Source: Anaeramoeba ignava BMAN (Eukaryota > Protista > Anaeramoebae). From it: a stretch of DNA of 64,000 nucleotides. The stretch's first letter is position 1; each line of letters begins with the position of its first letter. The notes below the pieces were generated by a model that did not search any database, had not been told where the DNA came from, and saw only the letters and a program-made list of their open reading frames with translations. Position numbers and translations under genes: made by a program. Below, one piece after another: positions 1-56,646 of the stretch. The DNA lies in the NCBI GenBank assembly GCA_028826165.1, contig JAPDFW010000129.1:79641-143640 (forward strand), read 5' to 3'.

Positions 1-1751
1 TAATTTGAATTCCATCTTTGATTTGATTTGAATAAATCCAATATTCAAATATTTGAAATGATTTATTACTTAATTCACTATAATCTGTAACTTTATTAGA
101 AGTATCATTTGTTACAGATAAAAACATTCCTCGATATAATTCACTTCTCATTATTAATATTAATTTAGGAAATTTATATTGTTTTTCTTTTCTTTCAATA
201 ATAAAATCTTTTTCATTTTCATTTTCATTTAAATAAATTCTTTTAATTGTTTCTTCAATTTTTTCATTTAAATTTATAATTTCTTTAATTTCAGAATATA
301 ATTTTGGATTTATTTTAGAATTGTTTGAATAAATCATTTCAAATATTTGATTTGATTCTTTAATTGATTTATTTGAAATAATTTCTTGAAGTTTTTCAAT
401 TTCATTTTGATTTTGATTTAATCTATATTTCAATATTAATTTATGAGCTTCAATTATTTCTCCATTTTCTGTTTTAAATGAAATATCACAAAATTCTTTT
501 CTTTCAAATAATTTTATCAAATCTTCTTCAATATTGGAAAAAGAAGAAAGAGAATAATAAAAAAATGAATTATCATATCCACAAGAAAGATGATAATTGG
601 AAATATTTTCATTAAATCTTAATTTAGGAAGTTCAATTTGAATTGGAATTAATTCGAAATTTGTATCTCCATTTCCTAAATGACCAAAATAATTATTTCC
701 AAATCCTATTAATTTTGGTTGTTAAAATCAAAGTGTGATCGAGTCCACAAGAAAAATCAAGAATATTATCATCATTTTCAAATAAAGATGATTTAATTTC
801 AGTAAATTCATAAGTATTTTCATTTTCATTTTTGCCAAGTCCATTATATCGATAATCTCCACATGAATAAAGTTTTCTTTTTGGATTTTCATTTTCATTT
901 TCATTTTCATTTTCATTTTCATTTTCATTTTCATTTTCATTTTCATTTTCATTTTCATTTTCATTTTCATTTTCATTTTCAATCAACATTATTGAATGAT
1001 AATTTCCGCATTTAATATCAATTATTTTGCCTTTTGGAATATTTTGGATTTTGGTTAATTTTTGGATTTTTGTTTCTTCTTTTCTTGATTCTCCTAATCC
1101 AAGTTGACCATGTTCATTATTTCCGCATCCAAATAATTCTTGATTTGAATTTAAAAGAAAAACAGAATTTGAAATATTTCCTGAAAATATTTTAAAAACA
1201 TTTTTCATCATTAAAATTGGTTTTTGTGTTTTTGGAAGTGTTTCAGAATCAAAACCAAGTTGACCAAATTCATTTGAACCAATTCCATAAGCATTTTGAT
1301 TTGAAGTTAATAAGTAAATTGAATTTCTTCCAGAAACAATATCTTGAATTATTCTATCATTTGTATCTTCAATTAATGATGAAATATTGATAAATTCATT
1401 TGGATTTTTTGAATTAATATTCATTCCTTTGGCAAATACATTTCCTTCTTTTGTTAAAATAGCTTCATTAAGAGCACCAACAGTTACTTTTTGAATATTT
1501 TCTTCAATTTGGATTTTTTCAGGATTTTGTTTTGAATTTTTTAAGTATTCTATTGCTTTTCCATTTTTAAAAAGGAAAATTGTTGATAAATTTCCTGTTG
1601 AAATTTGTTTAATTTGTTTTTCATTTTCATTTTCATTTTCATTTTCATTTTCATTTTCAAATTTAAATTGAATTGGTTTTGTTATTTTATTTGGTTTATT
1701 TTTGATAATTTTTGGTGAATAATTTAAACCAAAAAATAAACAATCATTCAT
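1..1751 (-). CDS. RCC1-repeat + BTB-BTB protein, copy A (3' end outside window; frameshift ~715)
   Basis: RCC1 motifs (FGCGNNEHGQLGLG, IKCGNYHSIML); the BTB module continues in another frame down to position 1; long (EN)n insert at ~885-980. Confidence 0.85.
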
Positions 1752-2109
1752 TTTTGAAAAAGAAAAAAATGAAAAAATGAAAATAAAATTTTAATTTTAA
1801 TTCTAATTTTAATTTTAATTTTGATTTTGATTTTGATTTTGATTTTGATTTTGATTTTAAATTTAATTTTAATTTTAATTTTGATTTTAATTTTAATTTT
1901 AATTTTAATTTTAATTTTGATTTTAATTTTAATTTTAATTTTAATTTTAATTTTGATTTTAATTTTAATTTTAATTTTAATTTTGATTTTAATTTTGATT
2001 TTGATTTTGATTTTGATTTTAATTGTAATTTTAATTTTAATTTTAATTTTGATTTTAATTTTAATTTTGATTTTTAATTTTAATTTTGATTTTGATATTA
2101 AATTTGATT

Positions 2110-3906
2110 TTAATTTTGATTTTGATTTTGATTATTAAATTTATTAATTAATAAATCAAATAAATTTGGATTTGTTTGATTTAATTGGAAATAATCAATT
2201 CCAATTTGAATTTCATTAATTATTTGTTTTGTAATTTGAATTTCTTCTTTAATTTTATTTGAATAAATCCAATATTCAAATATTTGAAATGATTTATTAC
2301 TTAATTCACTATAATCTGTAACTTTATTTGAAGTATCATTTGTTACAGATAAAAACATTCCTCGATATAATTCACTTCTCATTATTAATATTAATTTAGG
2401 AAATTTATATTGTTTTTCTTTTCTTTCAATTATAAAATCTTTTTCATTTTCATTTTCATTTAAATAAATTCTTTTCATTGTTTCTTCAATTTTTTCATTT
2501 GAATTTATAATTTCTTTAATTTCAGAATATAATTTTGGATTTATTATTCTGTTTGAATAAATCATTTCAAATATTTGATTTGATTCTTTAATTGATTTTT
2601 TTGAAATAATTTCTTGAAGTTTTTCAATTTCATTTTGATTTTGATTTAATCTATATTTCAATATTAATTTATGAGCTTTGATTATTTCTCCATTTTCTGT
2701 TTTAAATGAAATATTACAAAATTCTTTTCTTTCAAATAATTTTATCAAATCTTCTTCAAGATTGGAAAAAGAAAAAGAATAATAAATAAATGATCTATAA
2801 TATCCACAAGAAACATGATAATTGGAAATATCTTCATCAAATCTTAATTTAGGAATTTCAACTTGAATTGGAATTAATTGATATTGATTTGCATTTGGAA
2901 TTCCTAATTGGGCTAAATAATTATTTCCAAATCCTATAACTTTTCCTTTTATTGTTAAAATCAAAGTATGTTGATTTCCAACAGAAAAATCAAGAATATT
3001 ATCATCATTTTCAAATAAAGATGATTTAATTTCAGTAAATTCATAAGTATTTTCATATTTGCCAAGTCCATTATAATGATAATCTCCACATGAATAAAGT
3101 TTTCTTTTATTTTTTTCATTTTCATTTTCAATCAACATTATTGAATGAAATTCTCCAAATTGAATATCAATTATTTTGCCTTTTGGAATATTTTGGATTT
3201 TAGTTATTTTTTGGATTTCTGTTTCTTCTTTTCTTGATTCTCCTAATCCAAGTTGACCATATCCATTATATCCGCATACAAATAATTCTTGATTTGAATT
3301 TAAAAGAAAAACAGAGTTTGAAATATTTCCTGTAAATATTTTAGAAACATTTTTCATCATTAAAATTGGTTTTTTTGTTTTTTCAAGTGTTTTAGAATCA
3401 AAACCAAGTTGACTAAATTGATTTGAACCAATTGAATAAGCATCTTGATTTGAAGTTAATAAGTAAATTGAACTTTGACCAAAAAAAATATCTTGAATTA
3501 TTATATCATTTGTATCTTCAATTAATGATGAAATATTGATAAATTCATTTGGATTATTTGGATTAATATCTTCTCCTTTGGCAAATACATTTCCTTCTTT
3601 TGTTAAAATAGCTTCATTTCGAGAACTAACAGTTACTTTTTGAATATTTTCTTCAATTTGTATTTTTTGAGGATTTTGATTTGAATCATCTTTATTTAAA
3701 TATTCTATTGCTTTTCCATTTTTAAAAAGGAAAATTGTTGATAAATTTCCTGTTGAAATTTGTTTAATTTGTTTTTCATTTTCATTTTCATTTTTATTTT
3801 CATTTTCATTTTCAAATTTAAATTGAATTGATTTTGTTATTATATTTGGTTTATTTTTGATAATTTTTGGTGAATAATTTAAACCAAAAAATAAACAGTC
3901 ATTCAT
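2110..3906 (-). CDS. RCC1-repeat + BTB-BTB protein, copy B (intact, 598 aa)
   Basis: Seven RCC1-like blades, then FCNISFKTENGEIIKAHKLILKYR (BTB1) and KDFII..FPKLILIMRSELYRGMF (BTB2). Confidence 0.9.
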   Translation of the reverse strand: MNDCLFFGLNYSPKIIKNKPNIITKSIQFKFENENENKNENENEKQIKQISTGNLSTIFLFKNGKAIEYLNKDDSNQNPQKIQIEENIQKVTVSSRNEAILTKEGNVFAKGEDINPNNPNEFINISSLIEDTNDIIIQDIFFGQSSIYLLTSNQDAYSIGSNQFSQLGFDSKTLEKTKKPILMMKNVSKIFTGNISNSVFLLNSNQELFVCGYNGYGQLGLGESRKEETEIQKITKIQNIPKGKIIDIQFGEFHSIMLIENENEKNKRKLYSCGDYHYNGLGKYENTYEFTEIKSSLFENDDNILDFSVGNQHTLILTIKGKVIGFGNNYLAQLGIPNANQYQLIPIQVEIPKLRFDEDISNYHVSCGYYRSFIYYSFSFSNLEEDLIKLFERKEFCNISFKTENGEIIKAHKLILKYRLNQNQNEIEKLQEIISKKSIKESNQIFEMIYSNRIINPKLYSEIKEIINSNEKIEETMKRIYLNENENEKDFIIERKEKQYKFPKLILIMRSELYRGMFLSVTNDTSNKVTDYSELSNKSFQIFEYWIYSNKIKEEIQITKQIINEIQIGIDYFQLNQTNPNLFDLLINKFNNQNQNQN

Positions 3907-4058
3907 TTTTAAAAAGAAAAAAATGAAAAAATGAAAATAAAATTTTAATTTGAATTTTAATTTTAATTTTGATTTTAATTTTGATTTTGATTTTAATTTT
4001 GATTTTGATTTTAATTTTGATTTTGATTTTAATTTTAATTTTAATTTTAATTTTAATT

Positions 4059-5835
4059 TTAATTTTGATTATTAAATTTGTTAATTAATAAATCAAATAA
4101 ATTTGGATATGTTTGATTTAATTGAAAATAATCAATTCCAATTTCTATTTCATTAATAATTTCTTGTGTAATTTGAATTTCTTCTTTAATTTGATTTGAA
4201 TAAATCCAATATTCTAATATTTGAAATGATTTATTACTTAATTCACTATAATCTGTAACTTTATTTGAAGTATCATTTGTTACAGATAAAAACATTCCTC
4301 GATATAATTCACTTCTCATTATTAATATTAATTTAGGAAATTTATATTGTTTTTCTTTTCTTTCAATAATAAAATCTTTTTCATTTTCATTTTCATTTAA
4401 ATAAATTCTTTTCATTGTTTCTTCAATTTTTTCATTAGAATTTATAATTTCTTTAATTTCAGAATATAATTTTGGATTTGTTATTCTGTTTGAATAAATC
4501 ATTTCAAATATTTGATTTGATTCTTTAATTGATTTTTTTGAAATAATTTCTTGAAGTTTTTCAATTTGATTTTGATTTTGATTTAATCTATATTTCAATA
4601 TTAATTTATGAGCTTTGATTATTTCTCCATTTTCGGTTTTAAATGAAATATCACAAAATTCTTTTCTTTCAAATAATTTTATCAAATCTTCTTCAAGATT
4701 GGAAAAAGAAGAAAGAAGAGGAGAATAATAAAGAAATGAATTTTGAAATCCACAAGAAATATGATAATTAGAAATATCTTCATTAAATCTTAATTTAGGA
4801 AGTTCAATTTGAATTGGAATTGATTGATCTTCTGTATTTCCATTTCCTAATCCACCATATGAATTTCTTCCAAATCCTATCAATTTATTTTTTGTTGTTA
4901 AAACCAAATTATGATCAAGTCCACAAAAAATTTCAAGAATATTATCATCATTTTCAAATAAAGGTGATTTGATTTCAGTAAATTCATAAGTATTTTCATT
5001 TTTGTTAAATCCATTAGATCTATAATCTCCACATGAATAAAGTTTTCTTTTTTCATTTTCATTTTCAATCAACATTATTGAATGATAATCTCCACATTTA
5101 ATATCAATTATTTTACCTTTTGGAATATTTTGTATTTTGGTTAATTTATGGATTTTTGTTTCTTCTTTTCTTGATTCTCCTAATCCAAGTTGACCATATC
5201 CATTATTTCCGCATCCAAATAATTCTTGATTTGAATTTAAAAGAAAAACATGAGTTGAAATATTTCCTGTAAATATTTTAGAAACATTTTTCATCATTAA
5301 AATTGGTTTTTCTGTTTTTTTAAGTGTTATAGAATCAAAACCAAGTTGACCATCTTGATTTAAACCAATTGAATAAGCATTTTGATTTGAAGTTAATAAA
5401 TAAATTGAAAAGTATCCAGAAACAATATCTTGAATTATTCTATCATTTGTATCTTCAATTAATGATGAAATATTGATAAATTCATTTGGATTATCTGGAT
5501 TAATATCTCTTCCTTTTGCAAATACATTTCCTTCTATTGTTAAAATAGCTTGATTTTGAAAACCAGCAGTTACTTTTTGAATATTTTCTTCAATTTGTAT
5601 TTTTGAGATTTTGATTTGAAGGATTATTTAAATATTGAATTGCTTTTCCATTTTAAAAAGGAAAAATTGATAAATTTCCTGTTGAAATTTGTTTAATTTG
5701 TTTTTCATTTTCATTTTCATTTTTATTTTCATTTTCATTTTCAAATTTAAATTGAATTGATTTTGTTATTATATTTGGTTTATTTTTGATAATTTTTGGT
5801 GAATAATTTAAACCAAAAAATAAACAATCATTCAT
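4059..5835 (-). CDS. RCC1-BTB copy C (indels at ~5600-5670; pseudogene or sequencing error)
   Basis: ORFs 5653-5835 and 4059-5297 plus intervening homologous sequence; N-terminus identical to copy B. Confidence 0.8.
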
Positions 5836-6049
5836 TTTTGAAAAAGAAAAAAATGAAAAAATGAAAATAAAAAATTTTAATTTTAATTTTAATTTTAATT
5901 TTAATTTTAATTTTAATTTTAATTTTAATTTTAATTTTGATTTTTATAAATGAATTTTTAATTTTGATTTTAATTTGATTTTGATTTTAATTTTAATTTT
6001 AATTTTAAATTTTTTTGATTTTTAATTTTAATTTTAATTTTAATTTTAA

Positions 6050-7814
6050 TTTTAATTTGATTAAATTTGTTAATTTTAATTCTAATTTCAGTTTTTGATT
6101 TGGATATTTTAATTTTCAATTTCTGATTTTCATTAATAATTTCTTCTTTAATTTGAATTCCATCTTTTTGATTTGATTTGAATAAATCCAATATTCAAAT
6201 ATTTGAAATGATTTATTACTTAATTCACTATAATCTGTAACTTTATTTGAAGTATCATTTGTTACAGATAAAAACATTCCTCGATATAATTCACTTCTCA
6301 TTATTAATATTAATTTTGGGAAATTTATATTGTTTTTCTTTTCTTTCAATAATAAAATCTTTTTCATTTTCATTTTCATTTAAATAAATTCTTTTCATTG
6401 TTTCTTCAATTTTTTCATTTGAATTTATAATTTCTTTAATTTCAGAATATAATTTTGGATTTGTTATTCTGTTTGAATAAATCATTTCAAATATTTGATT
6501 TGATTCTTTAATTGATTTTTTTGAAATAATTTCTTGAAGTTTTTCAATTTGATTTTGATTTTGATTTAATCTATATTTCAATATTAATTTATGAGCTTCA
6601 ATTATTTCTCCATTTTCGGTTTTAAATGAAATATTACAAAATTCTTTTCTTCTAAATAGTTTTATCAAATCTTCTTCAAGATTAGAAAATTCTGCATAAT
6701 AAAGAAAAGATTTGTAATATGCACAAGAAAGATGATAATTGTAAGGATCAAAACATAATTCAGGAAGTTCAATTTGAATTGGAATTGATTGATTATTTGT
6801 ATCTCCAGTTCCTAATTGACCATACTGATTATTCCCAAAACCTATCAATTTTGAATTGGAAGTTAAAATCAAAGTATGAACATATCCACAAGAAAAATCA
6901 AGAATATTATCATTTTCAAATAAAGATGATTTGATTTCAGTAAATTCATAAGTATTTTCATCTTCTTTGCCAAGTCCATTATACTGATAAGCGCCAGTTG
7001 AATAAAGTTTTCTTTTATTTTCTTCATTTTCAATTTCAATCAACATTATTGAATGATAAAATCCACATTGAATATCAATTATTTTGCCTTTTGGAATATT
7101 TTGGATTTTGGTTAATTTTTGGATTGATTGATCTTTTCTTGATTCTCCTAATCCAAGTTGACCAAATTCATTCCATCCACAACAAAATAATTCTTGATTT
7201 GAATTTAAAAGAAAAACATGATTTGAATTGGTTCCTGAAAATATTTTAGAAACATTTTTCATCATTAAAATTGGTTTATGAGTTGTTTTCACAGAACTAA
7301 AATCAAAACCAAGTTGACCAAAAAGATTAGAACCAAATCCATAAGCATTTTGATTTGAAGTTAATAAGTAAATCGCATTAGCACCAGAAACAATATCTTG
7401 AATTATTCTATCATTTGGATCTTCAATTAATGATGAAAGTTGATACCATATATCAGGACCATCAGAAATATCTGAATCATTAGCAAAAGCAAAATCTTGT
7501 TCTTCGTTTTTTGCAAGAACTAATCCTTCTTTTGTAAGAACTATAACTTGATTTGAACCAACAGATACTTTTTGAATATTTTGCATATAAAGTTGATTTG
7601 TTTCATTGGAAAATGATAAATATTCATTTGCTTTTCCATTTTTAAAAAGTAAAATTATTGTAAAAACACCTGATAAAATTTGTTTAATTTCATTTTCATT
7701 TTCATTTTCATTTTCATTTTCAAATTTAAATTGAATTGGTTTTGTTATTTTATGTTCATAATTTTTTAAAAGAAGTTGAAAATTATTTTGACCAAAAAAT
7801 AAACAATAATTCAT
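6050..7814 (-). CDS. RCC1-BTB copy D (divergent blades 1-2; frameshifted/garbled C-terminus)
   Basis: ORF 6291-7814 plus BTB2 continuing in ORF 6116-6379. Confidence 0.8.
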
Positions 7815-13909: not shown

Positions 13910-15670
13910 ATGAATGATTGTTTATTTTTTGGTCAAAATAATTTTCATTTTGTTGAAAAAGATACAAATCTAATAACAAAACCTTCACAATTAAACTTTG
14001 AATTTGAAAATGAAAATGAAATTAAACAAATTTCATCAGGTTATTTTGCAACAATTTTCCTTTTTAAAAATGGAAAAGCAATTCAATATTTAGAAGATTC
14101 AAAACAAAATCCTGAAAAAATACAAATTGAAAATATTCAAAAAGTAACTGTTGGTTTTTCAAATGAAGCTATTTTAACAATAGAAGGAAATGTATTTGCC
14201 AAAGGAATGAAGATGGATTCGAATTATCCAAATGAATTTATCAATATTTCATCATTAATTGAAGATACAAATGATAGAATAATTCAAGACGTTGTTTCTG
14301 GTGCTTATTCAATTTACTTATTAACTTCAAATCATAATGTTTATGGAATTGGCTATAGTTATGATGGTCAACTTGGTTTTGGTTCTGAAACAATTCCAAA
14401 AACAGAAAAACCAATTTTAATGATGAAAAATGTTTCTAAAATATTTTCAGGAAATTCTTCAAATTATGTTTTTCTTTTAAATTCAAATCAAGAATTATTT
14501 GTATGTGGATATAATGGATTTGGTCAACTTGGATTAGGAGAATCAAGAAAAGAAGAAACAAAAATCCAAAAATTAACCAAAATCCAAAATATTCCAAAAG
14601 GCAAAATAATTGATATTCAATCTGGTTATAATCATTCAATAATATTGATTGAAAATGAAAATGAAAATGAAAATCTAAAAAGAAAACTTTATTCATGTGG
14701 AGATTATCGAACTAATGGACTTGGCAAAAATGAAAATACTTATGAATTTACTGAAATGAAATCACCTTTATTTGAAAATGAAAATGATAATATTCTTGAT
14801 TTTTCTGTTGGATATAATCATACTTTGATTTTAACAATAAAAGGAAAATTGATAGCATTTGGAAGTAATTTATCTGGCCAATTAGGAACTAAATATACAA
14901 AAGATCAATTAATTCCAATTCAAATTGAACTTCCTAAATTAAGATTTAATGAAGATATTTTTAATTATCATGTTCTTTGTGGATATTTAAATTCATTTAT
15001 TTATTATTCTCCTTTCCTTTCTTCTTTTTCCAATCTTGAAGAAGATTTGATAAAATTATTTGAAAGAAAAGAATTTTGTGATATTTCATTTAAAACCAAA
15101 AATGGAGAAATAATTGAAGCTCATAAATTAATATTAAAATATAGATTAAATCAAAATCAAAATCAAATTGAAAAACTTCAAGAAATTATTTCAAATAAAT
15201 CAATTAAAGAATCAAATCAAATATTTGAAATGATTTATTCAAACAGAATTATAAATCCAAAATTATATTATGAAATTAAAGAAATTATAAATTTAAATGA
15301 AAAAATTGAAGAAACAATGAAAAGAATTTATTTAAATGAAAATGAAAATGAAAATGAAAAAGATTTTATTATTGAAAGAAAAGAAAAACAATATAAATTT
15401 CCAAAATTAATATTAATAATGAGAAGTGAATTATATCGAGGAATGTTTTTATCTGTAACAAATGATACTTCTAATAAGGTTACAGATTATAGTGAATTAA
15501 GTAATAAATCATTTCAATTATTTGAATATTGGATTTATTCAAATCAAATTAAAGATGAAATTCAAATTACACAAGAAATTATTGAATGAAATTAAAATTG
15601 GAATTGATTATTTTCAATTAAATCAAACAAATCCAAATTTATTTGATTTATTAATTAATTAAAAATTTAA
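13910..15670 (+). CDS. RCC1-BTB copy E (1-nt insertion ~15584)
   Basis: ORF 13910-15589; the family tail continues out of frame. Confidence 0.85.
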
Positions 15671-15815
15671 TAAAATAAAAAATCAAAATTAAAATTAAAA
15701 TTAAAATTAAAATTAAAAAAATAAAATTTAAAATCAAAATTAAAATTAAAATTAAAACTAAAATTAAAAAAATTAAATTAAAATTAAATTCAAAAAAGGA
15801 AATGTTTAATTTGTA

Positions 15816-15923
15816 AAAGAAATTATTAATGAAATTAAAATTGGAATTGATTATTTTCAATTAAATCAAACAAATCCAAATTTATTTGATTTATTAATTA
15901 ACAAATTTAATAATCAAAATTAA
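15816..15923 (+). pseudogene. Orphan duplicate of the RCC1-BTB C-terminal tail
   Basis: Encodes KEIINEIKIGIDYFQLNQTNPNLFDLLINKFNNQN* with no upstream gene body. Confidence 0.8.
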
Positions 15924-15963: not shown

Positions 15964-17777
15964 ATGAATAAAATTATATTTTTTGGAAGAAATCAATATC
16001 CAAAACTTATAAAAAATGCACCAAATAAAATAACAAAACCAATTCAATTTAAATTTGAAAATAAAAATGAAAATGAAAATAAAAAACAAATTAAACAAAT
16101 TTCAACAGGTTATTTTTCAACAATTTTCCTTTTTGAAAATGGAAAAGCAATAGAATATTTAGAATATCCTAATCCAAAACAAAATCCTCAAAAAATTCAA
16201 ATTGAAGAAAATATTCAAAAAGTATCTGTTGGTTATCATAATGAAGCTATTTTAACAATAGAAGGAAATGTATTTGCAAAAGGATATGATATTAATCAAG
16301 AAAATTCAAATAAATTTATCAATATTTCATCATTAATTGAAGATACAAATGATAGAATAATTCAAGATATTGTTTCTGGTGCTTATTCAATTTACTTATT
16401 AACTTCAAATCAAAATGTTTATGGAATTGGTTCAAATTATGATGGTCAACTTGGTTTTGATTTTAAAACACTTGAAGAAGCAGAAAAACCAATTTTAATG
16501 ATGAAAAATGTTTCTAAAATATTTTCAGGAAATTCTTCAAATTATGTTTTTCTTTTAAATTCAAATCAAGAATTATTTGTATGCGGATATAATTCATTTG
16601 GACAACTTGGATTAGGAGAATCAAGAAAAGAAGAAACAAAAATCCAAAAATTAACCAAAATCCAAAATATTCCAAAAGGCAAAATAATTGATATTCAATC
16701 TGGTTATAATCATTCAATAATATTGATTGAAAATGAAAATCAAAATGAAAATCAAAATGAAAATGAAAATCTAAAAAGAAAACTTTATTCATGTGGAGAT
16801 TATCGAACTAATGGACTTGGCAAAAATGAAAATACTTATGAATTTACTGAAATGAAATCATCTTTATTTGAAAATGAAAATGATAATATTCTTGATTTTT
16901 CTGTTGGATATAATCATACTTTGATTTTAACAATAAAAGGAAAATTGATAGCATTTGGAAGTAATTTCTCTGGCCAATTAGGAACTAAATATACAAAAGA
17001 TCAATTAATTCCAATTCAAATTGAACTTCCTAAATTAAGATTTAATGAAGATATTTTTAATTATCATGTTCTTTGTGGATATTTAAATTCATTTATTTAT
17101 TATTCTCCTTTCCTTTCTTCTTTTTCCAATCTTGAAGAAGATTTGATAAAATTATTTGAAAGAAAAGAATTTTGTGATATTTCATTTAAAACCAAAAATG
17201 GAGAAATAATTGAAGCTCATAAATTAATATTAAAATATAGATTAAATCAAAATCAAAATCAAATTGAAAAACTTCAAGAAATTATTTCAAAAAAATCAAT
17301 TAAAGAATCAAATCAAATATTTGAAATGATTTATTCAAACAGAATTATAAATCCAAAATTATATTCTGAAATTAAAGAAATTATAAATTTAAATGAAAAA
17401 ATTGAAGAAACAATGAAAAGAATTTATTTAAATGAAAATGAAAATGAAAAAGATTTTATTATTGAAAGAAAAGAAAAACAATATAAATTTCCTAAATTAA
17501 TATTAATAATGAGAAGTGAATTATATCGAGGAATGTTTTTATCTGTAACAGAAGATAAATCAAATAAAGTTACAGATTATAGTGAATTAAGTAATAAATC
17601 ATTTCAAATATTTGAATATTGGATTTATTCAAATCAAATTAAAGATGAAATTCAAATTACACAAGAAATCATTAATGAAATTAAAATTGGAATTGATTAT
17701 TTTCAATTAAATCAAACAAATCCAAATTTATTTGATTTATTAATTAATAAATTTAAAATAATCAAAATCAAAATTAA
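15964..17777 (+). CDS. RCC1-BTB copy F (true end probably NNQNQN* at 17777)
   Basis: ORF 15964-18024; the (IK)n extension follows a small indel at ~17757. Confidence 0.88.
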
Positions 17778-17948
17778 AATTAAAATTAAAATCAAAATTA
17801 AAATTAAAATTAAAATTAAAATTAAAATTAAAATTAAAATTAAAATTAAAATCAAAATTAAAATTAAAATACAAATTAAAATCAAAATTAAAATTAAAAT
17901 TAAAATTAAAATTTCATTTTTCATTTTTCATTTTTCATTTTTTTTGAA

Positions 17949-45020: not shown

Positions 45021-45270
45021 TTTATTTAAATGAAAAAGAAAAGAAAAACAATATAAATTTCCAAAATTAATATTAATAATGAGAAGTGAATTATATCGAG
45101 GAATGTTTTTATCTGTAACAAATGATAAAACTTCAAATAAAGTTACAGATTATAGTGAATTAAGTAATAAATCATTCCAAATATTTGAATATTGGATTTA
45201 TTCAAATCAAATTAAAGAAGAAATTCAAATTACACAAGAAATCATTAATGAAATTCAAATTGGAATTAAA
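45021..45270 (+). pseudogene. Orphan RCC1-BTB C-terminal (BTB2) fragment
   Basis: Starts at YLNE..KEKQYKFPK and ends at IQIGI; no upstream gene body. Confidence 0.85.
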
Positions 45271-45392: not shown

Positions 45393-47177
45393 ATGAATGA
45401 AATTATATTTTTTGGTAAAAATGAATATCCAAAACTTATCAAAAATGAACCAAATAAAATAACAAAACCAATTCAATTTAAATTTGAAAATGAAAATGAA
45501 AATGAAAATGAAAATGAAAACGAAAATGAAAAACAAATTAAACAAATTTCATCAAGTTTCTTTTCAACAATTTTCCTTTTTAAAAATGGAAAAGCAATAG
45601 AATATTTAAGTGAAAATGATTTAAATCAAAATCCTGAAAAAATACAAATTGAAGAAAATATTCAAAAAGTAGCTGTTGGTGTTCAAAATGAAGCTATTTT
45701 AACAAAAGAAGGAAATGTATTTGCCAAAGGAATGAAGATGAATCCAAAAAATCCAAATAAATTTATCAATATTTCATCATTAATTGAAGATCCAAATGAT
45801 AGAATAATTCAAGATATTGTTTCTTCTGAAAGTTTGATTTACTTATTAACTTCAAATCAAAATGCTTATGGAATTGGTGGTAATCAATATGGTCAACTTG
45901 GTTTTGATTCTAAAACACTTCCAAAAACAGAAAAACCAATTTTAATGATGAAAAATGTTTCTAAAATATTTTCAGGAAATGATTCAGGACATGCTTTTCT
46001 TTTAAATTCAAATCAAGAATTATTTGGATGTGGCGATAATAGTTCTAGTCAACTTGGATTAGGAGAATCAAGAAAAGAAGAAATAAAAATCCAAAAATTA
46101 ACCAAAATTCAAAATATTCCAAAAGGCAAAATAATTGATATTAAATGTGGAAGTATTCATTCAGTAATGTTGATTGAAAATGAAAATGAAGATGAAAATG
46201 AAAATCCAAAAAGAAAACTTTATTCATGTGGAAATTACCAATATAACGGACTTGATGTAGATAATTACGAATTTATTGAAATCAAATCATTTTTATTTGA
46301 AAATGATAATATTCTTGATTTTTCTGTTGGAAATACTCATACTTTAATTTTAACATCAAAAGGGAATCTAATAGGATTTGGATATAATTATTATTGCCAA
46401 TTAGGAAATAGAAATACAAAAAGTCAATTAAAACCAATTCAAATTGAACTTCCTGAATTAAGATTTAAAGAAGATATTTCCAATTATCATGTTTCTTGTG
46501 GATATAATAAATCATTTCTTTATTATTCTCCTTCTTCTTTTTCCAATCTTGAAGAAGATTTGATAAAATTATTTGAAAGAAAAGAATTTTGTGATATTTC
46601 ATTTAAAACCAAAAATGGAGAAATAATTGAAGCTCATAAATTAATATTGAAATATAGATTAAATCAAAATGAAAATGAAATTGAAAAGCTTCAAAGAAAT
46701 TATTTCAAAAATCAATTAAAGAATCAAATCAAATATTTGAAATGATTTATTCAAATAGAATTATAAATCCAAAATATTCTGAAATTAAAGAAATTATAAA
46801 TTCAAATGAAAAAATTGAAGAAACAATGAAAAGAATTTATTTAAATGAAAATGAAAAAGATTTTATTATTGAAAGAAAAGAAAAACAATATAAATTTCCA
46901 AAATTAATATTAATAATGAGAAGTGAATTATATCGAGGAATGTTTTTATCTGTAACAAATGATACTTCAAATAAAGTTACAGATTATAGTGAATTAAGTA
47001 ATAAATCATTTCAAATATTTGAATATTGGATTTATTCAAATCAAATTAAAGATGAAATTCAAATTACACAAGAAATCATTAATGAAATTCAAATTGGAAT
47101 TGATTATTTTCAATTAAATGAAGCAAATCCAAATTTATTTGATTTATTAATTAACAAAATTTAATAATCAAAATTAA
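45393..47177 (+). CDS. RCC1-BTB copy H (frameshifts ~46695 and ~47158)
   Basis: ORFs 45393-46745 and 46742-47164. Confidence 0.85.
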
Positions 47178-47271
47178 AATTAAAAATTAAAATTAAAATT
47201 TAAATTAAAATTAAAATTAAAATTAAAATTAAAAATCATTTTTCATTTTTTCATTTTTTTTCTTTTCAAAA

Positions 47272-49057
47272 ATGAATGATTGTTTATTTTTTGGTTCAAA
47301 TAATTATCCAAAACTTTTCAAAAATGAACCAGAAATAATAACAAAACCTATTCAAATTAAATTTGAAAATGAAAATGAAAATGAAAATGAAAATGAAAAT
47401 GAAAAACAAATTAAACAAATTTCATCAAGTTTATTTGCAACAATTTTCCTTTTTAAAAATGGAAAAGCAATAGAATATTTAAATCAAAGAAATTCAAAAC
47501 AAAATCCTGAAAAAATCCAAATTGAAGAAAATATTCAAAAAGTAACTGTTGGTGTTCGAAATGAAGCTATTTTAACAAAGAAGGAAATGTATTTGCCAAA
47601 GGAGAATATATTAATTCAAAAAATCCAAATAAATTTATCAATATTTCATCATTAATTGAAGATAAAAATGATAGAATAATTCAAGATATTGTTTCTTCAG
47701 AAAGTTCAATTTACTTATTAACTTCAAATCAAAATGTTTATGGAATTGGTTCAAATGATTATTGTCAACTTGGTTTTGATTCTAAAACACTTCCAAAAAC
47801 AGAAAAACCAATTTTAATGATGAAAAATGTTTCTAAAATATTTTCAGGAAATGATTCGGGACATGCTTTTCTTTTAAATTCAAATCAAGAATTATTTGGA
47901 TGTGGCGATAATAGCTCTAGTCAACTTGGATTAGGAGAATCAAGAAAGAAGAAATAAAAATCCCTAAATTAACCAAAATTCAAAATATTCCAAAAGGCAA
48001 AATAATTGATATTAAATGTGGAAGTATTCATTCAATAATGTTGATTGAAAATGAAGATGAAAATGAAAATCCAAAAAGAAAACTTTATTCATGTGGAGGT
48101 TATCTATATAATGGACTTGGCAAATATGAAAATACTTATGAATTTACTGAAATCAAATTATCTTTATTTGAAAATGATAATATTCTTGATTTTTCTGTTG
48201 GAAATACTCATACTTTAATTTTAACTCAAACGGAAATTAATTGGATTTGGATATAATCAACAAGGCCAATTAGGAACTGGAACTACTTCTTTAAATCAAT
48301 TAAAACCAATTCAAATTGAACTTCCTAAATTAAGATTTAATGAAGATATTTCCAATTATCATGTTTCTTGTGGATTTGATAATTCATTTCTTTATTATTC
48401 TCCTCTTTCTTTTTCCAATCTTGAAGAAGATTTGATAAAATTATTTGAAAGAAATGAATTTTGTGATATTTCATTTAAAACCAAAAATGGAGAAATAATT
48501 GAAGCTCATAAATTAATATTGAAATATAGATTAAATCAAAATCAAAATCAAATTGAAAAACTTCAAGAAATTATTTCAAATAAATCAATTAAAGAATCAA
48601 ATCAAATATTTGAAATGATTTATTCAAACAGAATAATAAATCCAAAATTATATTTTGAAATTAAAGAAATTATAAATTTAAATGAAAAAATTGAAGAAAC
48701 AATGAAAGAATTTATTTAAATGAAAATGAAAATGAAAAAGATTTTATTATTGAAAGAAAAGAAAAACAATATAAATTTCCAAAATTAATATTAATAATGA
48801 GAAGTGAATTATATCGAGGAATGTTTTTATCTGTAACAAATGATACTTCAAATAAAGTTACAGATTATAGTGAATTAAGTAATAAATCATTCCAAATATT
48901 TGAATATTGGATTTATTCAAATCAAATTAAAGATGAAATTCAAATTACACAAGAAATCATTAATGAAATTCAAATTGGAATTGATTATTTTCAATTAAAT
49001 CAAACAAATCCAAATTTATTTGATTTATTAATTAACAAATTTAATAATCAAAATTAA
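47272..49057 (+). CDS. RCC1-BTB copy I (several frameshifts)
   Basis: Four ORF pieces collinear with the family consensus. Confidence 0.8.
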
Positions 49058-49415
49058 AATTAAAATCAAAATCAAAATTAAAATTTAAATTAAAATTAAA
49101 ATTAAAATTAAAATTAAAATTAAAATTAAAATTAAAATTAAAATTAAAATTAAAATTAAAATTAAAAATTAAAATTAAAATTAAAATAAAAATTAAAATT
49201 AAAATTAAAATTAAAATTAAAATCAAAATTAAAATTAAAATCAAAATTAAATTAAAATTAAAATTAAAATCAAAATTAAAATTAAAATTAAAATTAAAAT
49301 TAAAATTAAAATCAAAATTAAAATTAAAATTAAAATTAAAATCAAAATTAAAATTAAAAATTAAAAAAATTAAAATTAAAATTAAAAATCATTTTTCATT
49401 TTTTTCTTTTCAAAA

Positions 49416-51191
49416 ATGAATGAAATTTTATATTTTGGTGAAAATCAAAATCCAAAACTTATCAAAAATGAACCAAAAGAAAAAATAATAAAACCAATTC
49501 AATTTAAATTTGAAATTGAAAATGAAAATGAAAATGAAAATGAAAAACAAATTAAACAAATTTCAATAGGTTATTTTGGAACAATTTTCCTTTTTGAAAA
49601 TGGAAAAGCAATAGAATACTTACAAAGTTCAAGACAAAATCCTGAAAAAATACAAATTGAAGAAAATATTCAAAAAGTATCTGTTGGTTTTCAAAATGAA
49701 GCTATTTTAACTTCAGAAGGAAATGTATTTGCCAAAGGAAGTAATATTAATCCAAATAATCCAAGAGAATTTATCAATATTTCATCATTAATTGAAGATA
49801 AAAATGATAGAATAATTCAAGATGTTGTTTCTGCAGAATATTCAATTTATTTATTAACTTCAAATCAAAATGCTTATGGAATTGGTTCAAATCAAGATGG
49901 TCAACTTGGCTCTCAATCAATCCAAAAAACAGAAAAACCAATTTTAATGATGAAAAATGTTTCTAAAATATTTTCAGGAAATTCTTCACTTCATGTTTTT
50001 CTTTTAAATTCAAATCAAGAATTATTTGGATGTGGTGATAACAAATATGGCCAACTTGGATTGGGGAAACCGACAACAGAAACAAAAAACTATAAATTAA
50101 CCAAAATCCAAAATATTCCAAAAGGTAAAATAATTGATATTCAATCTGGATTTGCTCATTCAGTAATGTTGATTGAACAAGAAGATGAAAATGAAAATCC
50201 AAAAAGAAAACTTTATTCAACTGGAAGATTTTTTTTTAATGGTCTTGGCCAAGAAAATAGAGACATCTATGAATTTACTGAAATCAAATCATCTTTATTT
50301 GAAAATGATGATAATATTCTTGAAATTTCTATTGGATGTTTTCATAATTTGATTTTAACTTCCAAACGGAAATTAATTGGATTTGGAAGTAATTCATATG
50401 GTGAATTAGGAAATCAAGACGCAAATAATCAATTGATTCCAATTCAAGTTGAACTTCCTAAATTAAGATTTAATGAAAATATTTCCAATTATCATATTTC
50501 TTGTGGATATTCCAAAACATTTCTTTATTATTCTCCTTTTCTTTCTCCTTTTTCCAATCTTGAAGAAGATTTGATAAAATTATTTAGAAGAAAAGAATTT
50601 TGTAATATTTCATTTAAAACAGAAAATGGAGAAATAATAGAAGCTCATAAATTAATATTGAAATATAGATTAAATCAAAATCAAAATCAAAATGAAATTG
50701 AAAAACTTCAAGAAATTATTTCAAAAAAATCAATCAAAGAATCAAATCAAATATTTGAAATGATTTATTCAAACAGAATAATAAATCCAAAATTATATTC
50801 AGAAATTAAAGAAATTATAAATTTAAATGAAAAAATTGAAGAAACAATGAAAAGAATTTATTTAAATGAAAATGAAAAAGATTTTATAATTGAAAGAAAA
50901 GAAAAACAATATAAATTTCCCAAATTAATATTAATAATGAGAAGTGAATTATATCGAGGAATGTTTTTATCTGTAACAGAAGATACTTCTAATAAAGTTA
51001 CAGATTATAGTGAATTAAGTAATAAATCATTTCAAATATTTGAATATTGGATTTATTCAAATCAAATTAAAGATGAAATTCAAATTACAAAAGAAATCAT
51101 TAATGAATTAGAAATTGGAATTGATTATTTTCAATTAAATCAAACAAATCCAAATTTATTTGATTTATTAATTAGGAAATTTAAAAATTAA
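49416..51191 (+). CDS. RCC1-BTB copy J (intact, 591 aa)
   Basis: Complete ORF with the family architecture. Confidence 0.9.
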   Translation: MNEILYFGENQNPKLIKNEPKEKIIKPIQFKFEIENENENENEKQIKQISIGYFGTIFLFENGKAIEYLQSSRQNPEKIQIEENIQKVSVGFQNEAILTSEGNVFAKGSNINPNNPREFINISSLIEDKNDRIIQDVVSAEYSIYLLTSNQNAYGIGSNQDGQLGSQSIQKTEKPILMMKNVSKIFSGNSSLHVFLLNSNQELFGCGDNKYGQLGLGKPTTETKNYKLTKIQNIPKGKIIDIQSGFAHSVMLIEQEDENENPKRKLYSTGRFFFNGLGQENRDIYEFTEIKSSLFENDDNILEISIGCFHNLILTSKRKLIGFGSNSYGELGNQDANNQLIPIQVELPKLRFNENISNYHISCGYSKTFLYYSPFLSPFSNLEEDLIKLFRRKEFCNISFKTENGEIIEAHKLILKYRLNQNQNQNEIEKLQEIISKKSIKESNQIFEMIYSNRIINPKLYSEIKEIINLNEKIEETMKRIYLNENEKDFIIERKEKQYKFPKLILIMRSELYRGMFLSVTEDTSNKVTDYSELSNKSFQIFEYWIYSNQIKDEIQITKEIINELEIGIDYFQLNQTNPNLFDLLIRKFKN

Positions 51192-52150: not shown

Positions 52151-52198
52151 AGTTCCAAAATTTTTTTTCATTTTTTTTCATTTTTTTTCTTTTCAAAA

Positions 52199-53948
52199 AT
52201 GAATGATTGCTTATTTTTTGGTTTCAATAAAAATCCAAAACTTATCAAAAATGAACCAGAAACAATAATAACAAAACCCATTCAATTTAAATTTGAAAAT
52301 GAAAATGAAAAACAAATTAAACAAATTTCAACAAGTTTATTTTCAACAATTTTCCTTTTTAAAAATGGAAAAGCAATAGAATATTTAACTCAAGAAGATT
52401 CAAAACAAAATCCTTCAAAAATACAAATTGAAGAAAATATTCAAAAAGTAACTGTTGGTTATGAAAATGAAGCTGTTTTAACTTCAGAAGGGAATGTATT
52501 TGCCAAAGGAAAAGATATTAATTTAAAAGAATTTATCAATATTTCATCATTAATTGAAGATCCAAATGATAGAATAATTCAAGATGTTGTTTCTGGATAT
52601 AATTCAATTTACTTATTAACTTCAAACCAAAATGCTTATGGAATTGGTTCAAATTATTTTGGTCAACTTGGTTCTCAATCAATCCAAAAAACAGAAAAAC
52701 CAATTTTAATGATGAAAAATGTTTCTAAAATATTTTCAGGAAATGATTCAGGACACGTTTTTCTTTTAAATTCAAATCAAGAATTATTTGTATGCGGCTA
52801 TAATCAATTTGGTCAAGTTGGATTAGGAGAATCAAGAAAAGAAGAAACAAAAATCCCTAAATTAGCCAAAATCCAAAATATTCCAAAAGGAAAAATAATT
52901 GATATTCAATCTGGATTTTATCATTCAGTAATGTTGATTGAACAAGAAGATGAAAACCAAAATCCAAAAAGAAAGCTTTATTCATGTGGATATAATCTAT
53001 ATAATGGTCTTGGCAAATATGAAGATACTTATGAATTTACTGAAATCAAATCATCTTTATTTGAAAATGATGATAATATTATTGATTTTTCTGTTAGAAG
53101 TGCTCATACTTTGATTTTAACTTCCAATTCAAAGATGATAGGATTTGGACATAATCAACAAGGCCAATTAGGAACTGGAGATACAGAAAATCAATTAATT
53201 CCAATTCAAATTGAACTTCCTAAATTAAGATTTGATGAAAATATTTTCAATTATCATATTTCTTGTGGATATGATAGATCATTTCTTTATTATTCTCCTC
53301 CTTCTTTTTCCAATCTTGAAGAAGATTTGATAAAATTATTTAGAAGAAAAGAATTTTGCAATATTTCATTTAAAACAGAAAATGGAGAAATAATTGAAGC
53401 TCATAAATTAATATTGAAATATAGATTAAATCAAAATCAAAATCAAATTGAAAAACTTCAAGAAATTATTTCAAACAAATCAATTAAAGAATCAAATCAA
53501 ATATTTGAAATGATTTATTCAAACAGAATAATAAATCCAAAATTATATTTTGAAATTAAAGAAATTATAAATTCAAATGAAAAAATTGAAGAAACAATGA
53601 AAAGAATTTATTTAAATGAAAATGAAAAAGATTTTATAATTGAAAGAAAAGAAAAGAAATATAAATTTCCCAAATTAATATTAATAATGAGAAGTGAATT
53701 ATATCGAGGAATGTTTTTATCTGTAACAGAAGATAAATCTAATAAAGTTACAGATTATAGTGAATTAAGTAATAAATCATTCCAAATATTAGAATATTGG
53801 ATTTATTCAAATCAAATCAAAGAAGAAATTCAAATTACACAAGAAATCATTGATGAAATTCAAAATTGGAATTGATTATTTTCAATTAAATCAAACAAAT
53901 CCAAATTTAATTGATTTATTAATTAACAAATTTAATAATCAAAATTAA
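52199..53948 (+). CDS. RCC1-BTB copy K (1-nt indel ~53863)
   Basis: ORF 52199-53875; the tail continues out of frame. Confidence 0.87.
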
Positions 53949-54830
53949 AAATTAAAATCAAAAATTAAAATTAAAATAAAAATTAAAATTAAAATTAAAA
54001 TTAAAATTAAAATTAAAATCAAAATTAAAATTAAAATTAAAATTAAAATTAAAATTAAAATTAAAATCCAAATTAAAATTAAAATTTAAATTAAAATTAA
54101 AATAAAATTAAAATTAAAATTAAAATTTAAATTAAAATCAAAATCAAAATCAAATTTAAAATTAAAATTAAAATTAAAATCAAAAATTAAAATTAAAATT
54201 AAAATAAAAATTAAAATAAAATTAAACTAAAATTAAAATCAAAATTAAAATTAAATTAAAATTAAAATCAAAATTAAAATTAAAATTAAAATTAAAAATC
54301 AAAATCAAAATTAAAATCAAAATTAAAATTAAAATCAAATTAAAATTAAAATTAAAATTAAAATTAAAATTAAAATTAAATTTAAAATTAAAATTAAAAT
54401 CAAAATTAAAATTAAAATTAAAATTAAAATTAAAATTAAAATTAAAATTAAAATTTAAAATTAAAATTAAAATCAAAAATTAAAATTAAAATTAAAATTA
54501 AAAATTAAAATTAAAATTAAAATTAAAATTTAAAATTAAAATTAAAATTAAAAATTAAAATTAAAATTAAAATTAAAATTAAAATTAAAAAATTAAATTA
54601 AAATCAAATCAAAATTAAAATTAAAATCAAAATTAAAATTAAAATTAAAATTAAAATTAAAATTAAAATTAAAATTAAATTAAAATTCAAAATTAAAATT
54701 AAAATTAAAATTAAAATTAAAATTAAAAATCAAAATTAAAATTAAAATTAAAATTAAAATCAAAATTAAAATTAAAATTAAAATTAAAATTAAAATTAAA
54801 ATTAAAATTAAAATTAAAATTAAAATAAAA
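53945..54830. repeat. (AAAATT)n intergenic tract
   Basis: Visible. Confidence 0.95.
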
Positions 54831-54875
54831 TTCCAAAAATCATTTTTCATTTTTTTCATTTTTTTTCTTTTAAAA

Positions 54876-56646
54876 ATGAATGAAATTATATTTTTTGGTT
54901 TAAATGAAAATCCAAAACTTATCAAAAATGAACCAATTAAAATAACAAAACCAATTCAATTTAAATTTGAAAATGAAAATGAAAATGAAAATGAAAAACA
55001 AATTAAACAAATTTCTTCATGTGAATTTTCAACAATTTTCCTTTTTAAAAATGGAAAAGCAATAGAATATTTAAATGAAAATAATTCAAAACAAAATCCT
55101 GAAAAAATCCAAATTGAAGAAAATATTCAAAAAGTAACTGTTGGTTTTTCTAATGAAGCTATTTTAACAATAGAAGGAAATGTATTTGCTAAAGGAAAAG
55201 ATATTAATCCAAAAAATCCAAATGAATTTATCAATATTTCATCATTAATTGAAGATACAAAATGATAGAATAATTCAAGATATTGTTTCTGGATACCAGT
55301 CAATTTACTTATTAACTTCAAATCAAAATGTTTATGGAATTGGCTATAATCAATTTAGTCAACTTGGTTTTGATTCTGACTTACTTCTAAAAACAGAAAA
55401 ACCAATTTTAATGATGAAAAATGTTTCTAAAATATTTTCAGGAAATTATTCATTTTCTGTTTTTCTTTTAAATTCAAATCAAGAATTATTTGGATGCGGA
55501 TCTAATTATAATGGCCAAATTGGATTAGGAGAATCAAGAAAAGAAGAAACAAAAATCCAAAAATTAACCAAAATCCAAAATATTCCAAAAGGTAAAATAA
55601 TTGATATTCAATGTGGAAGTAGTCATTCAATAATGTTGATTGAAAATGAAAATCAAAATCAAAATCCAAAAAGAAAACTTTATTCATGTGGAAATTGGCA
55701 ATATAATGGACTTGATGTAGATACTTATGAATTTACTGAAATCAAATCATCTTTATTTAAAAATGAAAATGATAATATTCTTGATTTTTCTGTTGGAGAT
55801 TCTCATACTTTGATTTTAACTTCCAATTCGAAATTAATAGGATTTGGTTTAAATAATTTTAGTCAATTAGGAACTGGAGATACAAATAATCAATCAATTC
55901 CAATTCAAATTGAACTTCCTAAATTAAGATTTAATGAAAATATTTCAATTATCATATTTCTTGTGAATTTAAAAAATCATTTCTTTATTATTCTCCTCCT
56001 TCTTTTTCCAATCTTGAAGAAGATTTGATAAAATTATTTAGAAGAAAAGAATTTTGTGATATTTCATTTAAAACAGAAAATGGAGAAATGATTGAAGCTC
56101 ATAAATTAATATTGAAATATAGATTAAATCAAAATCAAAATCAAATTGAAAAACTTAAAGAAATTATTTCAAATAAATCAATTAAAGAATCAAATCAAAT
56201 ATTTGAAATGATTTATTCAAACAGAATTATAAATCCAAAATTATATTCTGAAATTAAAGAAATTATAAATTCAAATGAAAAAATTGAAGAAACAATGAAA
56301 AGAATTTATTTAAATGAAAATGAAAATGAAAAAGATTTTATTATTGAAAGAAAAGAAAAAACAATATAAATTTCCTAAATTAATATTAATAATGAGAAGT
56401 GAATTATATCGAGGAATGTTTTTATCTGTAACAGAAGATAAATCAAATAAAGTTACAGATTATAGTGAATTAAGTAATAAATCATTTCAAATATTTGAAT
56501 ATTGGATTTATTCAAATCAAATTAAAGATGAAATTCAAATTACAAAAGAAATAATTGAAGAAATTAAAATTGGAATTGATTATTTTCAATTAAATCAAAC
56601 AAATCCAAATTTATTTGATTTATTAATTAACAAATTTAATAATTAA
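54876..56646 (+). CDS. RCC1-BTB copy L (three single-base frameshifts)
   Basis: ORFs 54876-55265, 55249-56028, 56025-56369, 56314-56646. Confidence 0.83.

Follow-up and report, generated by a model that had tools for sequence, protein, structure and literature searches.

The closest described parallels to the genes reported here are the MATH-BTB (BATH) and F-box families that have expanded in nematodes and plants, for which a role in pathogen defence is hypothesised on indirect evidence (Thomas 2006, Genome Res 16:1017, cited via PMC1866355). As portrayed there, these are large, lineage-specific tandem families of ubiquitin-ligase adaptors in which a conserved docking domain is joined to a positively selected binding domain, and the gene family that we analysed in Anaeramoeba ignava resembles them in these respects. 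It differs in its scaffold, which is an RCC1-like seven-bladed propeller and not a MATH or FBA domain, in its host, a free-living anaerobic metamonad, in being larger (~700 members) and more uniform (~80% identity, with ~40 variable positions), and in recombination that appears pervasive enough to leave polymorphisms across the family in linkage equilibrium. The stretch of DNA analysed (the window) is the terminal 64 kb of the 143,640-nt A. ignava contig JAPDFW010000129.1 (GCA_028826165.1, record positions 79641-143640), with a GC content of ~19%. A tblastn search of the window with one of the genes, copy B, located 12 full-length, intronless paralogs (A to L), each encoding an RCC1-like propeller followed by a BTB domain, and three solitary 3' fragments.

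Several other known systems share part of this design. The animal proteins RCBTB1, RCBTB2 and IBtk have the same domain order, an RCC1-like propeller and then one or more BTB regions, but they are encoded by single- or few-copy conserved genes, and to our knowledge no animal member is hypervariable. The plant photoreceptor UVR8 is also a seven-bladed RCC1-type propeller; it has no BTB domain and carries conserved Trp and Arg residues where the A. ignava family has variable, Tyr-rich ones. No UV-B chromophore role is implied for the family. Plasmodium var genes, trypanosome VSG genes, avian immunoglobulin (Ig) genes and plant NLR clusters are likewise clustered mosaic paralogs shaped by ectopic conversion, in which conserved blocks supply the homology, variable blocks are re-assorted and fragments lie among intact genes. 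The A. ignava genes differ from these in having a BTB domain, in encoding probably intracellular products and in showing no evidence, in the assembled sequence, of mutually exclusive expression, somatic conversion or true pseudogene donors. Gene conversion among tandem paralogs is a routine mechanism, and the more interesting object here is the hypervariable, recombining RCC1-BTB repertoire. We looked for an account of the family in the A. ignava genome paper (PMC11550330), its text supplements and the searchable literature and met with none, although an entry in a supplementary table could have been missed.

We consider that the family is shaped by non-allelic gene conversion and unequal crossing-over in tandem arrays together with diversifying selection on the propeller face, and we assign this reading a probability of about 0.75. 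On this reading, the copies are shaped by duplication and by neighbours recombining non-allelically through homology, for the most part in gene conversion and to a lesser extent in unequal crossing-over and deletion. Tracts range from a few tens of bases to ~1 kb and end in the near-identical framework DNA between the loops. Diversifying selection acts on ~14 short loops, two per blade and all on one propeller face, and exchange re-assorts the loop variants into new combinations. The data show the exchange itself, the hypervariability with its location and the excess of non-synonymous change; that selection favours the re-assortment, that the variable face binds ligands and that the proteins work with cullin-3 is inferred.

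The 12 copies lie in three strand blocks: the minus strand carries A-D at 1-7814, and the plus strand carries E-G at 13910-21814 and H-L at 45393-56646. Their pairwise nucleotide identity is 0.85-0.94. The sequence-only reading of the window had proposed that loop variants are shared among them in incongruent patterns, and each of the nine motifs that it listed is present in exactly the copies named: MMKNVSK in B-L, TKYTKDQLIP in E/F/G, ISTGNLS in A/B/C/G, GNDSGH in H/I/K, GSQSIQKTE in J/K, QYNGLDVD in H/L, NQQGQLGTG in I/K, CGLDH in A/C and GTGDTNNQSIP in D (minus strand, 6812) and L (plus strand, 55870). Framework residues form much of these motifs, and a check against chance sharing was therefore needed. 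Chance does not account for the sharing: the loop motifs proved nearly private to the locus, with occurrences in 0-1 of 158 family members outside the window, and 75 locus-private 5-mers are shared among the 12 copies of the window compared with 18 ± 9 (maximum 61) in 500 random 12-member sets. NNSKIN, found in A and G, is not private; it belongs to a dimorphism that is frequent in the family (50 of 158). In the DNA itself, a 6-nt deletion together with a replaced block is common to J and K, a 12-nt deletion with a block to H and L, an identical 57-nt tract to D and L, although D is the most divergent copy, and a block directly upstream of the site of the D/L tract to I and K. As clades, the groups {J,K}, {H,I,K}, {H,L}, {D,L}, {I,K}, {E,F,G} and {A,B,C,G} are incompatible with one another, and rare, complex, locus-private characters thus bear out the proposed incongruence.

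The largest tract joins the neighbours E and F, which had been described as almost identical in their downstream part. The two genes differ at ~80 substituted columns in alignment columns 1-688 but at only five in columns 689-1753, apart from microsatellite length differences, and a cluster of six differences follows at columns 1754-1771; divergence thus falls from ~13% upstream to ~0.5% over ~1 kb downstream. Two in-frame coding (GAAAAT)n microsatellites, read as 'NENENE', vary in repeat number among the copies (alignment columns ~100-145 and 905-930; for example window 45490-45530 in H and 16830-16870 in F). The end points of exchange lie inside invariant spacers, as had been anticipated from the homology that such spacers offer. 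At the junction in K, a J-type patch and an H/I-type patch flank a 54-nt spacer that is identical in nine of the 12 copies, A, B and C having one point difference each.

Tests for recombination point the same way. The pairwise homoplasy index is strongly reduced (z = -8.3 with a scanning span of 10 informative sites and z = -3.8 with a span of 50), and none of 1000 permutations was as low. A GENECONV-style longest-run test yielded runs of 82 consecutive polymorphic sites for E/F, 51 for B/C at the 5' end and 27 for D/L (pairwise p < 0.0005), and allowing two trees across any single breakpoint improved the log-likelihood by 77-171 units. When five maximum-likelihood segment trees were compared, E and F were sisters in the three middle segments (80, 95 and 99%) and in neither the first nor the last, B and C were sisters only in the first and last segments (96 and 83%), H and I were sisters in the middle, I and K in the first, and J and K in the third and fifth. 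Approximately unbiased tests on the data of each segment rejected the topologies of the other segments (p ~1e-3 to 1e-44), and the comparison of per-blade trees, which had been suggested as a check on mosaicism, accordingly gave significant incongruence. Painting with a copying model required 142 switches compared with 97 ± 9 in site-shuffled data, a result of qualitative use only because the segment details depend on the parameters. Sharing of private motifs declines with physical distance (Spearman -0.40, Mantel p = 0.001), as expected from tandem duplication followed by local exchange. The supported incongruence and the identifiable tracts are those of a family undergoing ectopic gene conversion.

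The mosaics could in principle have been made only once, at the time of duplication, by unequal crossing-over of misaligned neighbours. Such chimeric duplicates would be at home in a tandem array with (AAAATT)n spacers, with long tracts between adjacent genes (E/F and B/C) and with leftover 3' fragments, and the 3' fragments and the long E/F tract do suggest some unequal crossing-over or deletion. As the sole process, however, this is highly improbable. Exchange has also occurred between copies on opposite strands (D with L, 49 kb apart, and G with A/B/C), where a crossover would invert the interval and not form a chimera, patches of 15-60 nt are embedded in otherwise different genes, such as those in K and the micro-tract in F, and family members dispersed over 55 or more contigs show linkage equilibrium. 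The short embedded patches and the opposite-strand exchange require gene conversion, and the interpretation that short segments are exchanged among neighbouring paralogs by conversion is supported.

The genome contains many more members than those in the window. A search with the open 558-aa part of K returned 706 proteins at E <= 1e-100, indicating a family of ~700. The named entries among the matches listed (161) belong to A. ignava and lie on at least 55 contigs in runs of adjacent locus tags, which implies that there are many such arrays. Hundreds of members are annotated as full-length, at ~590 aa. A capture-recapture estimate of family size (79 of 120 shared by two match lists) was discarded, in favour of the direct count at E <= 1e-100, because it is biased by correlated ranking. 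For 62 dimorphic framework positions compared across 152 full-length members, mean r2 is 0.007-0.008 (~1/n) at every distance beyond 5 residues, and all four gametes are present in 98-100% of pairs. Since single-step toggling could explain this result, we also examined complex markers, namely the N-terminal NDC/NEI haplotype, the indel-bearing NNSKIN/NRIIN, the ERKEFCD-type states and the two-codon EDK/NDT, and these are mutually independent (chi-square p 0.33-0.88). Recurrent mutation cannot recreate such complex states, so exchange appears to reach the whole family and not this array alone, to the extent that the one assembly can be relied on. The dimorphic-site and complex-marker tests replaced a rare-5-mer compatibility test, in which ~98% of pairs were incompatible at all distances > 10 aa, an outcome that fits saturation and shuffling equally. 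The proposal that new loop sets could arise combinatorially is thus plausible and is backed by the family-wide linkage equilibrium.

The encoded proteins were identified by sequence and by predicted fold. Copy B (598 aa) matched only A. ignava proteins in a protein word search, at 72-82% identity, and several family members are named 'Btk-binding protein-related' at NCBI. The RCC1 models PF00415 (75.1 bits in B and 81.4 in J; cut-off 21.7) and PF13540 (RCC1_2; 62.9 and 71.5 bits; cut-off 22) match above threshold, and the whole-domain RCC1 model PF25390 reaches 130-136 bits, under its cut-off of 150. The BTB model PF00651 scores 38.5 bits in B and 38.9 in J (cut-off 20.5) over two stretches, the best of which covers B residues 484-577. 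An AlphaFold (AF2) model built on an 83-sequence family alignment shows seven repeats of four strands in residues 1-378, with a predicted local distance difference test score (pLDDT) of mostly 85-96, and hence a confident seven-bladed propeller. In Foldseek, the top match is RCC1 (1a12, E 7.6e-24); the leading matches, which also include HERC2 RLD1 (4l1m), RCC1 bound to the nucleosome (3mvd), RPGR and UVR8, have E values of 1e-24 to 1e-19 and target-normalised template-modelling scores of 0.7-0.8; by sequence, UVR8 is the closest solved structure (profile E 7.5e-28). No signal peptide or membrane anchor was evident in a domain scan of the products, which together with the BTB domain makes them probably intracellular, and the propeller-BTB architecture suggests a probable cullin-3 substrate receptor. 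RCC1 proper, Ran's guanine-nucleotide exchange factor, was considered and rejected as an assignment: the loops on the interaction-type face are the most variable positions of the family, and ~700 copies with differing faces cannot all be Ran exchange factors.

Variability in the propeller is sharply localised. In an alignment of 113 family members, a near-invariant framework is interrupted by 43 columns, in 20 patches, with at least 2 bits of entropy. The main patches fall two per blade, giving ~14 loops across the propeller: the first comprises the two residues between the Gly and the His/Ser of the strand 1-2 hairpin (G-x-x-H), and the second the x positions of G-x-N-x-x-GQLG after strand 3. 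In a profile search of solved structures, the first patch aligns with the Trp and Arg of the UVR8 GWRHT motifs and the second with the GW...GQLG loops. In UVR8, these Trp and Arg positions line the dimer interface and the loops form an interaction face. From the beta-meander topology, both loop types are predicted to emerge on the same propeller face. Tyr makes up 23% of the residues at the hypervariable positions, a seven-fold enrichment, and these positions are also enriched in Trp, His, Arg and Asp and depleted in Ile, Lys and Leu; this composition is opposite to the mutational bias of 81% A+T and resembles that of binding sites. For all pairs of window copies, the Nei-Gojobori ratio of non-synonymous to synonymous divergence (dN/dS) reaches 2.4 at the 43 hypervariable codons, against 0.84 for the remainder of the propeller and 0.35 for linker plus BTB domain. 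As in the MATH-BTB and F-box families, there is a lineage-specific tandem expansion and, by the Nei-Gojobori estimate, a non-synonymous excess in the putative binding domain with a conserved docking domain, and diversifying selection on ~14 Tyr-rich loops of one propeller face is the best explanation. The variable face may accordingly be a ligand-binding one.

Selection on so few codons raises the question of whether recombination is needed at all, as parallel or convergent substitution from a restricted, selected set of residues, on a star-like duplication history, might place the same residues in different copies. The hypervariable patches are 1-3 residues long, Tyr/Asn/Ser-rich, near saturation with 45-87 variants among 113 genes, and nearly independent of one another; even for informative sites 11-60 nt apart, 57% of the pairs conflict. 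Moreover, the small blocks shared by B/L, C/J and B/K amount to one variable residue each and could be coincidence, and random 12-member sets also share some private 5-mers. Convergence cannot, however, repeat multi-base deletions with adjacent replaced blocks (J/K and H/L), nor can it give the 57-nt identity of D and L or the near-identity of E and F over ~1 kb, which includes synonymous sites. The motifs are almost absent from the 158 other members, and independence holds family-wide for multi-nucleotide and indel-bearing dimorphisms. We therefore regard a history without recombination as quite unlikely.

Most of the copies are interrupted as assembled. The sequence-only reading had held that only B and J are fully open, which requires amendment: F is also open over the whole homologous length, and G has a single frame, with GAG in place of ATG. 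Net frameshifts number one each in A, E, H and K, two in C, three each in D and L and four in I. All of the breaks are insertions or deletions (indels), about two thirds of them one-base length changes in runs of A, T or C; the clearest breaks outside homopolymers are a 5-nt deletion in A and an inserted G in E. No nonsense substitution was found in ~7,000 aligned codons, the sole in-frame stop lying within a locally shifted stretch of C. At 323 conserved positions, D is the only broken copy with an excess of changes (I has two and L one, compared with eight in the intact B). An alternative genetic code was rejected as a source of the breaks, as the standard code gives sensible translations of the open reading frames (ORFs), in which Gln encoded by CAA is abundant, and so were introns, as homology is continuous across each break with offsets of only 1-5 nt. 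The read-through ORF of F is 686 aa long and overlaps the start of the next gene by 76 nt, and copy G has an additional 36-nt internal duplication ('KIQKLTKIQKLT').

It had been suggested that broken copies act as sequence donors in the manner of VSG or avian Ig pseudogenes, and the corresponding mechanism would be programmed diversification, in which silent donors are copied somatically into a few expressed genes. The eight of 12 copies that are frameshifted as assembled, the short tracts bounded by invariant spacers and the three solitary 3' fragments would fit such a system. The donor idea nevertheless lacks positive support, since the breaks are small indels in a Nanopore R9 assembly with no nonsense substitutions, and conserved positions are kept in every broken copy except D. 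All copies possess a start and the complete set of domains, the annotation includes hundreds of full-length members on at least 55 contigs, and no expression site, telomeric context or donor/acceptor asymmetry is visible, nor does any copy stand out as an acceptor. The exchanges that we see are fixed in the germline assembly. A programmed mechanism is thus very unlikely, and the process looks like evolutionary exchange in the germline and not like demonstrated programmed shuffling.

The assembly was produced from Nanopore R9.4/9.5 reads with ABruijn, three rounds of Racon, Nanopolish and two rounds of Pilon (PMC11550330), and residual homopolymer indels are expected from it, especially where short reads are hard to place. 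We examined whether the breaks fall in stretches of at least 120 nt that are identical to another local copy, and the result was mixed: five of 17 do (stretches of 120-270 nt). For most of the single-base breaks, the assembly is no reliable guide in either direction. Real decay is the likelier explanation in G, which has lost its start, A with its 5-nt deletion, D, the solitary fragments and a thirteenth RCC1-BTB copy, which lies directly left of the window (14286-16017 of the flanking sequence L002). This thirteenth copy has a frameshift, one or more in-frame stops and a decayed BTB region, ~76% identical to that of B where the BTB-region matches of the window copies are ~87-98% identical, and it is the most convincing true pseudogene of the array. 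In practice, caution is called for with the apparent pseudogenes that Nanopore-era assemblies show in families of this kind.

The same pipeline raises the possibility that Racon, Nanopolish or Pilon mixed reads from different paralogs and created false mosaics as well as false frameshifts. With ~700 copies that have long identical framework stretches, with most breaks of the type left by R9 errors and with several of them in stretches where short reads are unplaceable, this needs to be weighed. The copies differ by about 9%, with a copy-specific patch every 50-100 nt, and long reads and most read pairs are therefore placeable. Mis-polishing should pull sequences toward the majority allele, and should not make rare private blocks with 6-nt and 12-nt deletions that only two copies share. 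It would not produce the sharp step from 13% to 0.5% between the adjacent genes E and F, and random mixing of reads among ~700 copies would not make sharing depend on distance. We consider this account unlikely for the pattern as a whole; an artefact is a far more probable source of the frameshifts than of the mosaics.

Several observations weigh against gene conversion with diversifying selection. The whole of the evidence comes from one Nanopore-based assembly and its annotation, in which cross-talk between paralogs during assembly or polishing is possible, and exact look-ups of B and J matched that one NCBI assembly only, with no Logan or other contigs. Site compatibility decays within ~30 nt, and the effect of distance beyond 60 nt is not significant (p 0.10-0.13), so that much of the short-range signal could stem from homoplasy or multi-nucleotide change at codons under selection; unambiguous evidence of exchange is confined to the longer tracts and the indel-bearing characters. 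The Nei-Gojobori dN/dS is a crude measure in a genome of 81% A+T, and dS is also raised at the hypervariable codons (0.30 compared with 0.08-0.12). Finally, the assignment of the loops to the same face is based on topology and the UVR8 alignment and not on measured coordinates, and the BTB part is poorly modelled (pLDDT < 50).

Table 1. Positions in the window of the RCC1-BTB copies, their fragments and exchange tracts, and other features of the region.
Feature	Position	Strand	Remarks
Copy A	1..1751	-	C-terminal end beyond window start, completed in left flank (L002); frameshift near 715, the 5-nt deletion (tblastn, indel list)
Copy B	2110..3906	-	Intact, 598 aa; Pfam RCC1, RCC1_2 and BTB above cut-offs
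Copy C	4074..5835	-	Frameshift ~5604 (C-run and A-run one base short each); local double shift with stop at 5655
Copy D	6100..7814	-	Most divergent; extra loop insert; frameshift ~6318 (additional A in A-run); disturbed 3' end
Copy E	13910..15660	+	Single frameshift near 15584, near C-terminus
Copy F	15964..18024	+	Open throughout; 2-nt insertion near end removes usual stop; ORF runs into (AAAATT)n spacer
Copy G	20003..21814	+	Uninterrupted frame; GAG at start codon position; first in-frame ATG 20528
Copy H	45393..47164	+	Net frameshift at 46693-46709
Copy I	47272..49042	+	Four frameshifts (~47579, 47945, 48226, 48705), three with a single A missing from A-run
Copy J	49416..51191	+	Intact, 591 aa
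Copy K	52199..53945	+	Single frameshift ~53861, near C-terminus
Copy L	54876..56646	+	Three single-base frameshifts (~55259, 55946, 56356)
Solitary 3' fragment between E and F	15813..15896	+	B residues 559-586 (tblastn)
Solitary 3' fragment upstream of H	45043..45267	+	B residues 497-570 (tblastn)
Solitary 3' fragment	61067..61371	+	B residues 489-594; internal frameshift (tblastn)
E/F exchange tract	E 14482..15407; F 16560..17497	+	
F patch	17550..17565	+	K/L-type state (EDK, not NDT) within otherwise E-identical part; micro-tract in BTB domain
B/C 5' tract	B 3745..3897; C 5674-5826	-	One difference over 51 polymorphic sites
K mosaic junction	52671..52755	+	J-type patch with 6-nt deletion 52671-52686; spacer 52687-52740; H/I-type patch 52741-52755
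D/L identical tract	L 55862..55915; D 6767-6820	L +; D opposite	49 kb apart
H/L patch with 12-nt deletion	L 55709..55723; H 46249-46263	+	
Hexanucleotide arrays	1787-2143, 21793-22102, 23052-23368, 37907-40091, 41402-42477, 43406-43817, 49037-49387, 51184-52148, 53928-54832, 62240-62646		
TTGATT-type repeat array	7896-9902		Between copy D and next gene
BTB-BACK-TLDc paralogs	11629-13096; 58222-59975	-; +	
P-loop protein gene	17949-19985	+	678 aa; between F and G
ABC-transporter gene	22280-26273	-	
Membrane-protein gene pieces	39850-41361; 62828-63942	-; +	
AT-rich satellites	31973-32685, 33713-34572, 56711-57930		Period about 143/287 nt

The surroundings of the genes are rich in repeats (Table 1). 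Hexanucleotide microsatellites, (AAAATT)n/(AATTTT)n and variants, fill many intergenic spacers over 0.3-2.2 kb and lie directly 3' of several RCC1-BTB copies; they translate as long pseudo-ORFs ('ILILIL/NFNFDF/KIKIKI'), swamped a self-BLAST of the window for duplication units, and could promote misalignment of the gene array. The TTGATT-type array extends over 2 kb, with a GC skew of 0.89 in the bin 8001-10000. One of the AT-rich satellites, at 33713-34572, separates two ORF pieces of a protein-kinase gene and is hence probably intronic, and AT-rich, repeat-bearing gaps divide the ABC-transporter gene into three or more ORF pieces.

A different BTB family, with BTB-BACK-TLDc architecture, contributes two paralogs that flank the arrays, and a further pair lies left of the window (L002 20292-21797), so that more than one kind of BTB-type adaptor is clustered in the region. 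The P-loop protein encoded between F and G has weak matches to DAP3 (PF10236, above cut-off), STAND-NTPase and AAA_5, and G starts 18 nt past the stop of its gene. The two membrane-protein gene pieces are near-duplicate and inverted, ~22 kb apart, with common stretches such as 'KKRPLFSCGLMSDKNFEIPKENK', which indicates that segmental duplications in the region extend beyond the RCC1-BTB genes.

What stands out in the A. ignava genome is a set of several hundred near-identical genes that differ almost only at ~40 positions on a Tyr-rich propeller face tied to a BTB domain. A further reading, which we put forward tentatively and consider doubtful, is that the ~700 genes form a germline repertoire of intracellular RCC1-propeller-BTB receptors whose paratope-like, Tyr-rich face of 14 loops is continually re-assorted by short-tract conversion, inside arrays as well as genome-wide, and which feed diverse, fast-changing targets to cullin-3 ubiquitination. 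The family would then behave as a population of genes that recombine freely. A. ignava houses bacterial symbionts in a dedicated symbiosome, and the candidate targets would be proteins of symbionts, prey bacteria, viruses or selfish elements. If the variable face binds targets, this would be among the largest protist adaptor repertoires known and the first on an RCC1 propeller scaffold; the receptor reading, if true, would mean a combinatorial system of innate recognition built on a scaffold for which no such use has been known. The family would also offer a testable model of how a framework stays uniform and its loops diversify under the joint action of recombination and diversifying selection. 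It raises the questions of whether RCC1 propellers may serve as a natural binder scaffold and of what an amoeba would need hundreds of intracellular specificities for.

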